DNA of 63,702 nt, filler included, from Choristocarpus tenellus KU-1152 (lineage: Eukaryota; Protista; Phaeophyceae): the NCBI GenBank assembly GCA_964200185.2. It is 13 parts of 13 records of this genome, joined end to end, with 100 filler letters (N's around TTAATTAATTAA, not from the genome) between each part and the next. Parts side by side here need not be neighbours in the genome. Positions count along the whole stretch, not along the records: positions 38,318 to 45,222 come from CAXNAD020007095.1; 12 more parts are not named here. One strand, given 5' to 3'. The stretch's first letter is position 1, and each line of letters starts with the position of its first letter. The notes under the pieces are model-generated. The model was not told the origin of the DNA. It was given only the letters and a program-made list of their open reading frames with translations, and did no database searches. A program made the position numbers and the translations under genes. Of this stretch, positions 38,218 to 45,222 are shown piece by piece.

Positions 38218-38539
38218 NNNNNNNNNNNNNNNNNNNNNNNNNNNNNNNNNNNNNNNNNNNNTTAATTAATTAANNNNNNNNNNNNNNNNNNNNNNNNNNN
38301 NNNNNNNNNNNNNNNNNCAAGGAGGGATTTCAGGGCTTGTGGGGGACAGGTTACGCAGCTCCCTTCCCCACCCCACCAGTACCCAGTGGGTCCACAAAGC
38401 GGAAATACCCCCCAACCAACCCCTTCGCACAGCCTTCACGGAGGTAAGTTGTACTGCTCTTCAAAGCCGAAACCAATTTAGAGGTATGAAGGGTTGCTCT
38501 TCAAGATTACCGAGAATGGACAAAAAATACGCCATTTTG

Positions 38540-38732
38540 TGCAAATTTCAGAAAGAGCCCTTTGCTGAATTGTGGCGTCACTTTGTGTGTGGAAAAGCCT
38601 TTTTTTTCCATTTTTGCGTACAACTATTGCGAACATAAGGCAATGCAAAGTAGTGTGTTGTGCAGGGTGAGAAAGTGGCGTAGAATACGAAAGAGTCCAC
38701 CAAACCTGCCTATCTCTCTCGATTGGTTTGGA
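38540..38732. repeat. Copy of the long terminal repeat of the 29474-32298 element
   Basis: AATTGTGGCGTCACTTTGTGTGTGGAAAAG...CCAAACCTGCCTATCTCTCTCGATTGG matches the reverse complement of 32083-32250. Confidence 0.65.
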
Positions 38733-40317
38733 TACCCAGGCCCTGATCACCTCCACACCAGACACATCCGCTAGGCCGTCACCAGCACAGACATTGGCCA
38801 CGAAGGCGTACCTGCCGTTTTTGTGAATGTCTGGGCTCCAATGTACGCCTCCCCTGATTCCCTCCCTCTTGAGTTCTGAAGATTTCCAAACAGTTTTATC
38901 ACCTCTCTGCTCTGGGGGAAATTGCCCCCCAGTAGCTTCCTGTTTGTTATTTTTAGGTGGGTATGTGGCTCAGCATTCTTGTCAACTGACATCCATATAC
39001 TTGGACAGGAACTGGGAGATATCGGTGTAAATTTGGATTTGGTGTTCCCAAGAGGGTGGAAAGGGCCCTAATGGACACCCTCCCAAGGCACGAGTGTGGG
39101 GAATGGGCCTCTCAAGCCTGGACGGGGAAAACGATTTCACTGGTAGTGGTGCTCGCAGGAGGGATTATTTTCTTGACCTTGACAGTATTATATAGTGTTT
39201 CTTGAATCATCTGTTGACATGTATTTGTTGTTGGACCCACCAACCAACTGTAATGCGAATTATCCTCTTTCTGTAAAAAATCCCATTTCCCAAAATCCAA
39301 CATTCATTCTCACAAGTGGGGGCACACGACGAATAGATCCGCGCGGAAGAGAGGTGGTACTGGTCGTGGACAGACGGACGGACGAACAAAAGACAGATGG
39401 ACGGACAGGAATCGCTTGGGTTTACGGTATGTGCATAAGAGGATCAAAAAAGGTTTTCCGAGGGCCACTTTGCCGAATTACGTTTTGGTAGCCCTTTCTA
39501 AACGGATCTGTCTGTTGTCAGAAATGTAGCAGGGGTGAGTCGGCCCAATGTTAATTTTACACGAGAGGAAATGGCCCCTGAGATATAATGCGACCCAATC
39601 CCAGGGCTTGCCTAATGGCCAGGATTGCTACACCCTTTCACAGCCCCAATTGATACTGAGCCAACGTAAACGAGAGGTGACCAGGTTTTGGCAGATATTC
39701 ATCTCAAGCCAGTTTTCGATCTTTCGTAAAAGTCACTCATATTTTCTATGAATGAAATGCTAAGATGGACTTGAGACCGTTGATTTCTCTATAATAGTTT
39801 GAAAAAAATCGGCGTGATTCAGAAAATATCCTGAACACATTTGAAGAAATAGACCACCAATGTTGCACACATCTGCCATCATTCTTCAGATTCAACTCTG
39901 GGTACCTTTCGTTTACTTCAACTCATTTGAGTTAGTACTCGACCCTTATCTTGCCTTCTACACTTCAGGGAGCTTGACTGCCTTTGATTAATCAGAGATG
40001 GTATTAATTTTTTCAGTTATTATATGATAAATTATATTTCGTGCTTGTAAGCAACAAAAATATCCTTGGTTTGGGGGAGAAGGTGAGGGCTTGACTCACA
40101 CTACTAGGTGTGAATTCTTCAACTACCATTTCTATGGGGAGGACGGTTGCTAACTAGCGCTGCCTTATCCCTTACGATTCTTAATTAGGAATACGCATCC
40201 TTTCAATAACCTTCGTCGATTGGTACATGAGTGGTTGATCTTCTCGCATCTTATCCTCCTTTCCCGACTTTGGGAAGGCATTTTCTCCTATGATACTTCT
40301 AGTACTGGATAAAAAAA

Positions 40318-40369
40318 GCAATGAATTACAAAAATTATGGCTTACCAATCTCAGAATTAGTATCTGAAG
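40318..40369 (+). pseudogene. rpoH: Fragment of bacterial heat-shock sigma factor sigma-32, region 2
   Basis: Translates AMNYKNYGLPISELVSE, matching the alphaproteobacterial RpoH motif IAMxY(R/K)xYGLPxxE(V/L)(I/V)SEG; only 17 codons. Confidence 0.7.
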
Positions 40370-40431
40370 CCAAAAGAAGAATCAAAGTTTCTTTATCGAT
40401 TTTAGAATTTTGCTGTAAATATATCGATAGT

Positions 40432-40512
40432 TCCACCAATGATAGATATTAGAGCAGATTCTTTTACTAAATGAATTAATTCGTTGACCAATAACGCAAA
40501 TAAATTCTCCAT
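40432..40512 (-). pseudogene. Fragment of a bacterial polar amino-acid ABC transporter permease (HisM/GlnP-like)
   Basis: Translates MENLFALLVNELIHLVKESALISIIGG, like the conserved PxLxNExIxLxKxS(A/S)LxSxIG motif. Confidence 0.65.
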
Positions 40513-40567
40513 AAAATAATTCCTAATATAGAAATATTACTTACAAGGAGTATTCCACGCTAATAAA

Positions 40568-40633
40568 ATACCCGTTAATATAGAAAACTCCTCTATTACT
40601 AATTCTTCTTGGCAAACCATCTGCGTATCCTAT
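40568..40633 (-). pseudogene. alr: Fragment of bacterial alanine racemase C-terminal domain
   Basis: Translates IGYADGLPRRISNRGVFYINGY, the GYADGxxRxxSNxGxxxING signature. Confidence 0.78.
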
Positions 40634-42114
40634 ATAGCTCTCAAATCAAATACAAAAAAAATGAAAGAAGTATTATATATACTCTTAGATAAATTACGTA
40701 AAGTACGAGTAGGAGGCATTATAAAAGATAATTCTATTTAAAAAATGGACAAAAAATATATATTTAGGAAAAAATGATAAGGTATCCGGAATTTTACAGA
40801 AAATGATTTTACAGCAATTCAGTACATCTCTTGAGTGGTATACTCAAATTATTTCAGAATCATTAGGTGTCCTTTATAGTTACTACGATAGGATAGGATT
40901 TGAAATACTTGTATCTTTATCGCACGCTTACATATTTAATATGTTGTCCTGTCGAGAGAATTATGAGTGCGCAAGTTAAATCGACTCAAATTTTTCAACG
41001 TACTCAATTAGAATGGAAATGTGCACAAAACGCACGGGGGAAGTAAAAGGTTCTACGGCTAGTGATGGGGGGCCCTGCTGGAGGCGAAATATTTTTGAGG
41101 TGATTTTCATTTCCGCAAAATTTGCTAGACACGTTGTGATGTGATGTCTGAGAGACGATTGTATGTAACCTTTTTGGAGAAACTCCACCTTTTCCATATC
41201 ACACCAGCGATACAACAACAACCTCACCACAGCACTGCTTCCCCCATTGACCTCCATACATCCACTACAGGATGTCGTATCTGATGCATGCACAACCTGT
41301 TGTTGACCTTGCGTTTGTGAGTGCAAGGATTACCGCTGGACAAATGGCACAACAGTGGCTGAGGTAGCCAACAAGGAACAGATAGGCCATAACGGCATCA
41401 GGACATTTGCTGTTCGATGGTGAACAATAGACCTTAGTTTTGATCCTCGCCATCTCTGTGCTGCATGCTCCTGTTCAGTGCTAGTAATTTTGGTGTATAA
41501 AGTCAAGCGTATGAGGAAACGAAATTCTGGTGGCATGGGAGTTGGGGACCACCCTGTAGCATAGGGCAGGGCAAGTCAGTATTGATGTTTTGAAGATGAT
41601 TGATGGCTTCTGGGGGCCAATGATTTTTGGAAAAACTGAAATGGGACAACGCGGACAACATGATCATATGTGGGATAAGGATCGCTCAAACGGATATCAG
41701 GCAGGTAAGGATGCTCTAGAGGGCCTCAGACGGACAAAGAGTCAACGAAGATTCTGATAATTTAAGAGCTGAATCAACATTTGGCGAGTCAGAGAGATCT
41801 TTAGCAAGACTCTTCGCCAGAGACTGTGCAAAATGGACATGTGTATAGGTTCTTTATTTTATAATATGCGAGTCTACATTTTGATTTTGTCCAGGAGATG
41901 TGACTAATGAGATATGTTCGTACTCGTATATTTTATTTGTATATTTTGACTGGAAATCGGTTGCTATTTAATTAGATACAGACTATGCTGCTTTGATATC
42001 GTTAGCCATAGTATCTCTGCGAGACCAGCATATTAACAGGACATCATTTTCGTCGATAAACAATAAACGCCAACATGTTGCGGTGATCATCGGGAGAGAT
42101 AGGATAGCATGCAT

Positions 42115-42376
42115 GAGTGAAAGTATCTTAGAGGGTACGAGTTTTGCCCTGTTTGTCCGTTTGGGGCTTGGCTTCCCTCGGGGTTTTTTTAATGACATTT
42201 TCCTACTCCAAAATATTTCGGAGACGGTAAAATGTATGCGTTAATGAAAAGGTGTGCCCCGAACAAGGATATTGACACTTCCTAACAAACACAATAGCCA
42301 AAATTACATCAAAGCTGCAAGAGTGGATTTTGGCCCCCGAATGGACGCGGCTCTACCCTCTAAGATACTTTGACTC
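42115..42376. mobile_element. MITE family A, best-preserved copy
   Basis: 23-bp TIRs with one mismatch (GAGTGAAAGTATCTTAGAGGGTA / TACCCTCTAAGATACTTTGACTC); TSD GCAT/GCAT. Confidence 0.95.
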
Positions 42377-43371
42377 GCATGGTGACTGCAACTCATGGTA
42401 AGGAATAGCTAGGGATACAAATAAGTTATAAAGACACATTAGCGAGAGTATAACCACGAGTTCTGTCTCTCTTTTTTCGGTTCTTCAATAACCATGTGAC
42501 TTTCACCCTCCAACAACTGGGCCATGTGAGGCTCCCATTTCTTTCCTCTCCCGACTTCTATCTCGATCAAGTCTTCACCAAGCCATATACACAAATATCA
42601 GTCTACCAAGGATATCAGCAGATCATGAGGGTTAGGCTTTGTATATTCACGCTATCTTCTTTCATGTGCTTTACGTATAGTACACACTCATCACATAGCA
42701 ACAGAGAAATGTGTCCTATTTCTGACCCCCACTCCAAGCACACGCAGAGCTGTGCGTTTCTCCGACATACCGAGTTTCGTAAACCTAAGGGAAGAATTGG
42801 TCCATAGTTTCCTCTATGGAAATCCAACACTGTTCTCACCATCTCGCCCTCTACTGCTATCGCCCCCCCCTCCTGTCACCCCCTCCTTCTCACACCCTTC
42901 CCTTCCCTTACCAATACCCTTAGATGCTGCTAGAGGGTCTCGCGATGGCTTGGGGGACAAGACCCTCCTCAATCCTAGGAAGAGTTAACAGACAAAGGGC
43001 AACGGCACTCATACCATGGGGATGACACGGGTAGCAGACAGCACCTAGTTAAAAAAATCTACTCATCCCAGCTCAGGAATAAAGTGCGGGTAACACAACT
43101 GTGTACATGGTTGTGCATGCTCCTGTACCTCATCAGCAAGGACCTCTACCTGGCGTCAAGGGGTCGATTAAGCTCCCAACTGCGAGGAGAACTTTATCGG
43201 GATCGAAAGTGTCAGAGAAGTCGAGAAGAATAGCTCAGCATCCAGGCACATTGTTGAGAAGCTTGGCGCATGCAAGGCTCGTCGCCGAAAGCTAGTAGTT
43301 GAATTACACGGTAAAGCATACACTGGATTATTTATTGTCCGCAGGGTATTGTCCATTTGGTGCCCGATATA

Positions 43372-44046
43372 ACTATATTACTGCTATTGTCCCACCCACT
43401 ATACCACTTGTAATGTCCAATTGGCCTACCATAACGTACCGCTGTGCACGTCACTACTTTGTATTGTACCGAACTAAAGATCAACGTACATAAAACCTAT
43501 GATACACCCACTACGAGTGCTCCTTTGATCCTCGTAGTTGTATCCTCTAAACTTTTGCGGTGGAATGTTTTGTGCGCCTCGGTAAGCAAGCGGAATGCTT
43601 CCTGGGGGAGCTGGCTACTCACATTGTAGGAGGTAGAGGAGCGGGAGGATATGGCTGGAAAGGAGTAGTTAAATCCAGGCTACGCCAAATTGTTTCAGGA
43701 ACTACGCAAGTGGCATTGTCTCGATGTGCCATGCACTTCAAACTAGACTCACCAGGGAGATGGGGGCACGGAGGGGTCTGTTGGATTCTTTGGATGCCTT
43801 ACTTGCTTCCCCCCCCGTGGCACAGGAGTAGGTAGATGGGAAGCAAAGGGTGACAGTAGTACAATATTTGATAGTGGTGAAGTAACAGATTAGTGGTTTC
43901 CACACTTAAAATGTTTTATAGTGTTCTTACGTTTTGGATATTTTATTTCTTTAGGGCTAATGACGACATATATATAGTTTTCATTGGTTTCCCCCCTGAC
44001 ACATCTATCTGCGAAATGTTAGAGGGCATAATAATAAAATAATATA
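43372..44046. repeat. Rearranged pieces of repeat family D (see 60232-60469)
   Basis: 43372-43482 is near-identical to the reverse complement of 60344-60447, and 43968-44046 matches 60232-60308. Confidence 0.75.
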
Positions 44047-45188
44047 TACTTGATCGGCACAGATAATGTAAGGATAATACCAGGTTATTCGACATCCTTC
44101 CCTTGCTGAAAATAAGTATTAACTCTCAATCACAAAAATAAATAAAGAAAACGCACATGTTATCTCACATGTTCGTCAAAAACTTCACATGCTGTCTAAA
44201 AACTTGAACTGACAAATTCTTCGTCAATACATCTGCCCTCTGATAGTTACTTGATCCCTCCAAAGAATGTTCCGAAACCGTCTTTTTGCAATCGTGAAGA
44301 GCGCACTTTAATTGGTCGGTTCAAATATCGCCTTCAAGAAACTTCCGTGATTTGGGGAAGAGAGGGTTTATCATGTTGGTCGTTCCCTGCCAAGAATGAA
44401 CGTTGGAAAAGTTACATTACATTTATTCTGAACAGAGGAAGTAGAAGACAATCTTGGTATCGTAGGGGAAGAGGTAATAAATGGTTGTAAGTTGAAGAGG
44501 GAAAGCAATAGTATATTTATGGATGTACGTATGTGTGCACGTATGTACGTATTGCGGTCGTTAGAAAGTGTGCGTAATAAACACTACTCCATTTTCGGTT
44601 CATAAATATGAAAAGGATCGTCTTTGCTTCAAAATAATAAATTCAATCATGTCGTTGATAACAAATTGTTGAGGCCCTACAGATAGACTCTGTTGTTGTG
44701 TTCTCACTGACTTCCAACCAGTTTACGGACCTCCTTAGCGAAAGAATGACAAAGAATACAAAATATCTATGGAGTGAATTAATTCGAGTTCTCCTCTAGA
44801 GCCACAGCCCATGCAGTAAATGGTAGACACACACCAACAATAGAAAGTCTCCGTCCATGTCAACAATAACAGTAAAAAAGACACACCGTTCTCATCCTCT
44901 CTGCAATGCACACACCTCCTTTTACTAGTGTCGACATCATTATTAACATAGTCTTTCAACGCAGAGGTTACTTCATGCTCTGCACACCATTGATTATTCA
45001 CTCTACACCATACCCGCACACATCCCATGAATTCTAGTACCATCTCCTCCCCTGACTATTCCAAGCCACCCCGTCCACGAACCCATCAATATCGACAGTC
45101 TCTCCCCTTGATGCCAAAGCCCAGGAGTCAATTACACCATCTAGTACAGAAGTCCTTTTTCTCGAAACTTGATAGAGTATCACCGAGA

Positions 45189-45222
45189 GGGTCAAAGTAT
45201 CTGGGGTGGGTGGGGTGGGGGG
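45189..45222. mobile_element. MITE family B terminus at contig end
   Basis: GGGTCAAAGTATCTGGGG... Confidence 0.7.

Follow-up and report, generated by a model that had tools for sequence, protein, structure and literature searches.

A mosaic of decayed gene scraps, very likely of Rickettsiaceae origin, in nuclear DNA of the brown alga Choristocarpus tenellus

The nucleus of Volvox carteri, in a symbiont-free strain, carries an insert of Rickettsiaceae DNA (Kawafune et al. 2015, PMC4324946), and filarial nematodes carry nuclear Wolbachia transfers (NUWTs), which are pseudogenised fossils of lost infections, can duplicate, and lie near repeats (PMC12693587). Complex NUMT and NUPT mosaics form when segments are end-joined before or during insertion and are then subject to mutation, rearrangement and proliferation (review, PMC7037861). 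Bacteria of the Megaira group have been found in brown-algal sequence data from Nemacystus decipiens (PMC10132079) and Ectocarpus sp. 12 (bioRxiv 10.64898/2026.03.27.714854). Rickettsiaceae are rarely documented in ochrophytes in general, and since the brown-algal records consist only of genomes or 16S sequences from sequencing projects, residence inside the alga is left open. A literature search that had most subscription journals outside its coverage turned up no account of rickettsial DNA integrated in a brown alga, and neither Rickettsia nor Megaira is mentioned in the Phaeoexplorer preprint text and the supplements consulted (bioRxiv 10.1101/2024.02.19.579948).

Here we describe an island of bacterial gene scraps in Choristocarpus tenellus KU-1152, a brown alga of the Discosporangiales. 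Its assembly, GCA_964200185.2, was made from short reads with SPAdes (164 Mb, N50 6.8 kb, 44% GC) and is accompanied by two DNA runs (Illumina) and an RNA run, whose three samples belong to one study (Phaeoexplorer supplement, bioRxiv 10.1101/2024.02.19.579948). The culture was non-axenic. The window, that is, the whole stretch of DNA analysed, is 63,702 nucleotides long, filler included, and the island lies on contig CAXNAD020007095.1 (window positions 38318–45222). Contigs from the three runs were placed on positions 38318–44300. We take X1 and X2 to be the DNA runs and X3 to be that of RNA; since all three were made from the strain of the assembly itself, the samples are biologically non-independent.

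Gene scraps in an AT-rich island

Across positions 40310–40950 the GC content is 25–30%, against 46.5% in either flank. Four gene scraps lie here within 640 bp, in the orientation + − − +:

40310–40369, plus strand: rpoH (sigma-32) scrap of Rickettsiaceae type, about 60 bp, with an abrupt left edge
40370–40430, unstranded: AT-rich stretch of 61 bp without assigned source; fits a decayed continuation of the permease weakly (p about 0.02), and one of rpoH weakly as well
40431–40492, minus strand: polar amino-acid ABC permease scrap of a Rickettsiaceae/Megaira family, 62-bp core; may span 40420–40538 with indels
40493–40567, unstranded: stretch without assigned source, according to the shuffle test of the permease extension
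40568–40633, minus strand: alanine racemase (alr) C-terminal domain scrap, 63–66 bp, identified at family level
40634–40891, unstranded: AT-rich stretch of about 25% GC, possibly with more unrecognised scraps
40892–40952, plus strand: probable scrap of the C-terminus of atpB (F0 subunit a), 61 bp, its DNA 74% identical to that of Ca. Megaera polyxenophila

A sequence-only reading of this DNA had reported a mosaic of three scraps, rpoH, permease and alr. All three are real, and their peptides are present at the places and on the strands given there; the atpB scrap and the repeated block in which the island is set were overlooked. The extent that it gave for the permease, 40432–40512, holds for the core at 40431–40492, while any homology reaching 40512 or further is weak.

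The best match of the rpoH scrap agrees at 17 of 19 amino acids and belongs to Rickettsiaceae; sigma-32 models match it weakly (NCBIfam E about 0.01), and similarity at the DNA level covers 40310–40369. A genome scan gave 12 confirmed loci, nine of them labelled Rickettsiales, Rickettsiaceae or Rickettsia, and the Rickettsiaceae-type motif is common to all 12. Motifs of this type also occur in metagenome-assembled genomes labelled Janthinobacterium (L010, 531–590) and Verrucomicrobiia (L012, 5396–5458), the first of which resembles a mis-binned Rickettsiaceae contig.

For the permease scrap, a degenerate pattern retrieved 32 low-GC loci that form one family, with 19 of 20 residues in the best, and whose named members are Rickettsiaceae and Ca. 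Megaera venefica. Because the search was led by the pattern, the match is partly by construction; the four residues that follow and the identity of the family are independent of it. The same scrap gave no matches with phmmer against 1.84 billion representatives or in a word-indexed search, the query being too short. Gapped alignments suggested longer decayed tiles (shuffle p about 0.02 and 0.08 on the permease sides, 0.6 for atpB), and these longer limits held up poorly against shuffles and were rejected.

The alr scrap is recognised by Pfam Ala_racemase_C (E 2e-4), by the NCBIfam alr model (6e-4) and by the alanine racemase structure 3kw3 in PDB (E 4e-4). Strict patterns found no Rickettsiaceae alr in metagenome and viral contigs, and a loose pattern returned one unrelated gene.

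The atpB scrap was found without a pattern, through the flanks of the fetched permease loci. Its relatives are Rickettsiaceae, including CP104166 (Ca. Megaera polyxenophila), and the NCBIfam model of subunit a also matches. It has lost 7 of the 19 residues that are invariant in the fetched loci, among them a glutamine conserved across subunit a, and at its left edge 5 bp are duplicated in tandem. This is the weakest of the four scraps, probably atpB and by itself only moderately significant; its placement comes from the comparison with Rickettsiaceae DNA. The stretch before it, 40634–40891, gave no match above shuffle level against 560–640 kb of Rickettsiaceae DNA, and matches to cytidine deaminase and other plasmid sequences at 40637–40860 were discarded as AT-rich noise.

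In a DNA-level comparison with 560 kb from Rickettsiaceae, rpoH (58 bits), permease (58) and atpB (47) alone exceeded the maximum of the shuffled island (42.6). Over 1.2e12 six-frame sites, the chance expectation is 0.005 for the 17/19 match of rpoH and 6e-5 for the 19/20 match of the permease. NCBIfam E values of about 0.01, as obtained for rpoH and for atpB, are indecisive alone, since unrelated matches reach 0.02–0.03 elsewhere in the piece. Mismatches to living relatives at codon positions 1/2/3 number 3.1/2.0/8.9 in rpoH, 4.1/0.6/11.6 in the permease and 3.7/2.0/11.7 in atpB, a bias that resembles the pattern among the living relatives themselves. As the mismatches fall mostly at third positions, the scraps descend from real coding genes. 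Agreement at conserved sites is about 90% within the cores and 20–50% immediately outside, where the homologues are conserved too. All scraps are truncated, with stops at their bounds, and indels separate the two versions of the island described below: the insert is pseudogenised and is decaying neutrally.

These comparisons point to Rickettsiaceae as the donor of the rpoH, permease and atpB scraps, and to the Megaira group within them, a placement that follows from best matches, cores of about 60 bp at 72–80% identity being too short for a supported tree. The AT-rich intracellular alphaproteobacterium proposed earlier is thus narrowed for these three scraps. Genes for rpoH, alr and this permease are not known from brown-algal organelle genomes.

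The cores measure 60, 62, 63–66 and 61 bp (rpoH, permease, alr, atpB) and are separated by 61, about 75 and 258 bp. Roughly half the island has no assigned source. Under exponential sizes so narrow a range has a p of 0.003–0.2, depending on assumptions, and a detection limit near about 60 bp may be its cause. A repeat search of the piece found no repeats separating the scraps. An imperfect 24-nt direct repeat (79%; 40511–40534 and 40563–40586, 52-bp spacing) occurs between the alr and permease scraps, either by chance in AT-rich DNA or as a trace of junction repair.

The repeated nuclear block that carries the island

The island belongs to a longer host sequence with the following features:

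38318–41913, unstranded: host repeated block carrying the island; extends at least 640 bp past the left end of the contig
40576–40672, unstranded: 97 bp absent from the high-depth sister version (contig comparison), comprising most of the alr scrap
41642–43251, unstranded: copy, 7–8% diverged, of a host sequence; in the DNA runs the latter is single-copy, and in X3 it is abundant and free of the MITE
42115–42376, unstranded: host MITE of 262 bp, with inverted ends of 23 nt that begin with GAG, flanked by a target duplication of 4 bp

Two versions of the island were recovered from the runs. An exact contig of 463 bp (40349–40811, depth 26.7) spans the permease, alr and the gap that follows, and the other exact contigs have depths of 14–24 (14.2, 23.5). 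The second, sister version consists of contigs diverged by 4–9% over 38323–41913, with depths of 187–354 in X1 and 52–106 in X2. This is about 9–15 times the depth of the single-copy contigs, a rough estimate of copy number because contig depth is GC-biased. Sister contigs from two samples bridge the left flank and rpoH (960 bp), rpoH and the permease (X2 record 11), and atpB and the right flank (1118 bp). The homology to alr extends two codons beyond the breakpoint of the 97-bp difference, so it is probably the sister version that lost these bases.

The occurrence of the same joints in two diverged versions rules out an assembly chimera, and the stops and frameshifts of the dead genes rule out a living contaminant. 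An organelle origin of the high-depth version was rejected on size and GC: the mitochondrion (32 kb, 31% GC) and plastid (120 kb, 27% GC) of C. tenellus (bioRxiv 10.1101/2024.02.19.579948) cannot hold a 4-kb block with flanks of 46% GC. At nuclear depth, short-read contigs from two DNA samples bridge the island and the nuclear DNA of the host, with the host MITE and the transcript paralogue linked to it. The earlier view of a nuclear symbiont fossil, as opposed to a contaminant, is supported; both scrap-scrap and host-island junctions, whose confirmation by long reads or PCR it had called for, are spanned by separately assembled short-read contigs.

Searches of 117 and 43 reading segments with Pfam and NCBIfam revealed no transposase, no protein family in the block and no further scraps. 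Profile matches to dnaX, MobC, ZorC and AzlD in the reading segments were background, and a reverse-transcriptase-like motif near 40255 was unsupported by Pfam. Neither inverted ends nor element termini of the block were found within the piece; its left end is off the contig, and no right end was located. Rfam, ARAGORN, and BLASTN of the piece against phages and plasmids yielded nothing real. Inside the block, on the minus strand at 40979–41575, reading segments of 81 aa and 117 aa follow each other in one frame with a single stop between them; queried singly, neither has a match in Pfam, NCBIfam or Atlas.

The block meets the copy of the host sequence at a sharp junction at 41642. Being a paralogue of a host sequence, the stretch 41642–43251 links the island with nuclear DNA of the host. 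That host sequence has no recognisable ORF and is possibly a UTR or a long non-coding RNA. The copy is interrupted by the MITE, which the sequence-only reading had already seen on this contig and which is indeed genuine and present in very high copy; an empty site in X3 record 15 (minus 266 bp) confirms the target duplication. The traits of this element may resemble those of Sola2 elements. A second high-copy host repeat, without obvious inverted ends, covers 43300–44300 (summed depth about 160,000–190,000 in X1 over 43518–44117), and a partial match to the MITE end at 45186–45202, by the right edge of the contig, may mark where a related element begins. No contig of X3, the probable RNA run, lies over the island.

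Origin of the mosaic

That the island is a Rickettsiaceae fossil in the host nucleus, whether it came about by end-joining, by collapse of a longer insert or by capture as cargo, we consider very likely. The explanation that we favour, with some confidence, is that DNA of a symbiont or parasite of the Megaira group was end-joined at a nuclear break in the manner of a complex NUMT, and that the resulting fossil, without function, decayed and was passively amplified. The scraps descend from coding genes of a Rickettsiaceae bacterium, with alr placed at family level; this bacterium would have infected an ancestor of this Choristocarpus strain. Short pieces of several loci, released from lysed bacteria, may have been joined end to end as filler at a double-strand break. 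The insert has decayed neutrally, as the stops, indels and lost invariant residues show. The host block was also duplicated, presumably afterwards; a derivative that lacks 97 bp of alr exists in about ten near-identical copies, and its amplification would have carried the mosaic passively. Since the single-copy version is more complete than the sister, amplification probably followed the formation of the mosaic. Among 57 Rickettsiaceae loci, neither alr nor rpoH was found near the permease or atpB.

The end-to-end ligation proposed earlier would account for the joints, which are real, and for the mixed orientations; the alternative of a collapsed insert, which we regard as a less likely but serious competitor, fits the linkage of permease and atpB and the deletion in the sister version. 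It holds that one long Megaira-group insert, tens of kb in length, shrank by successive deletions and an inversion, leaving relics in roughly their ancestral order, with no need for prior end-joining. In Ca. Megaera polyxenophila and relatives, the permease (−) is followed by atpB (+) at a distance of 6.1 kb; that the two are neighbours there in the same orientation as here speaks against end-joining and is compatible with collapse. In other Rickettsiaceae, rpoH (+) and the permease (−) have common neighbour genes (L002 versus L031), and the 97-bp deletion that consumed the alr scrap is a loss of the kind required. However, what separates permease and atpB in those genomes is pepA, mipZ, fadB, dsbA and atpI, and not alr; no relic of these five was found in the gap, and it would be strange for deletions to leave four relics of almost the same size. 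Gene order within the group is also highly variable, so the linkage of permease and atpB could be due to chance.

It is improbable that a mobile element (Helitron-like, Pack-type or a retro-element) took up the scraps singly as cargo, together with a piece of a host transcript. The block around the island does have about ten times single-copy depth and runs into the host-transcript paralogue at 41642, and, as in Pack-MULEs and Helitrons, gene fragments are carried by a multi-copy sequence (the sister version, at about 9–15 times single-copy depth). Yet none of the 117 reading segments matched a transposase or another protein family, a search of the piece for inverted ends or termini found none, and the more complete state of the single-copy version places amplification after the mosaic.

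We give still less credence to size-selected capture, by which foreign pieces of about 60–65 bp would be ligated one after another and retained as an archive of an immune-like sort. Equally doubtful is its more specific form, a row of about ten uniform 60–65-bp slots, four of them recognisable, filled through size-selective capture by the nucleus or by a carrier repeat, where the stored fragments of an intracellular bacterium would be templates for silencing RNAs. The near-equal cores (60, 62, 63–66 and 61 bp; p 0.003–0.2) are what this has in its favour; against it, no repeats lie between the scraps, no RNA family was found with Rfam, no X3 contig covers the island, and the scraps decay and are deleted. 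Moreover, scraps much shorter than about 60 bp would hardly be detected, and the permease edges may extend further. The suggestion of an archive of foreign sequence tags is therefore not upheld, as there are neither separating repeats nor an X3 contig over the island.

Least credible, and largely refuted, is an artefact or another source, be it chance similarity, organelle DNA or a chimera assembled with bacteria of the culture: the scraps are short, the assembly was made from short reads of a non-axenic culture and the atpB scrap was compared with Rickettsiaceae rather than with brown-algal mitochondrial atp6, but two versions 5–9% apart have common joints, stops and frameshifts are present, depth tracks that of nuclear DNA, organelle size and GC are incompatible with the block, and the chance expectation is far below 1.

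Comparison with known inserts

Heritable integration in the Choristocarpus nucleus argues that a bacterium of the Megaira group once lived or lysed within its cells, and so points to a past infection in a lineage of algae from which no such bacteria are known. The host belongs to the earliest-branching order of brown algae, and with 60 Phaeoexplorer genomes a fossil record of Megaira-group infection becomes directly testable genome-wide. The Megaira of Nemacystus and Ectocarpus are living genomes from sequencing projects, whereas the DNA in Choristocarpus is dead and integrated in the nucleus.

The Volvox insert resembles the island in that unlinked loci are joined (a truncated 16S beside murB), a scrap of ftsQ is only 75 bp long, and host repeats are interleaved (PMC4324946). 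Its pieces, however, measure 400–800 bp or more, are largely intact and partly syntenic (PMC4324946), in contrast to the pieces of about 60 bp here, which are decayed, come from unrelated genes and are amplified inside a repeat. Largely intact genes in donor synteny, as in Volvox, are absent from the island, which holds 60-bp decayed scraps. Regular repeats between spacers, as in CRISPR or piRNA clusters, are likewise absent.

The island is like NUWTs in its homology to Rickettsiales (for alr at family level only), its junction with host nuclear DNA and its pseudogenised state. NUWTs average 430–2000 bp and come from Wolbachia (PMC12693587), whereas the pieces here are about 60 bp, lie edge to edge in a stramenopile host, and have a donor probably of the Megaira group. 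With complex NUMTs and NUPTs (PMC7037861) the island has in common segments of separate loci in mixed orientation, although linkage of permease and atpB in the donor is possible; this likeness is read from the layout of the segments, between whose cores lies DNA without assigned source. The source of NUMTs and NUPTs is an organelle, while that of the island is a bacterial symbiont, with best matches in Rickettsiaceae.

The insertion is thus of a known kind, that of the NUWTs and the Volvox insert, and of ordinary mechanism, and what is new is its brown-algal host. From known inserts it departs in the very small size of its pieces, in its amplification and in its host.
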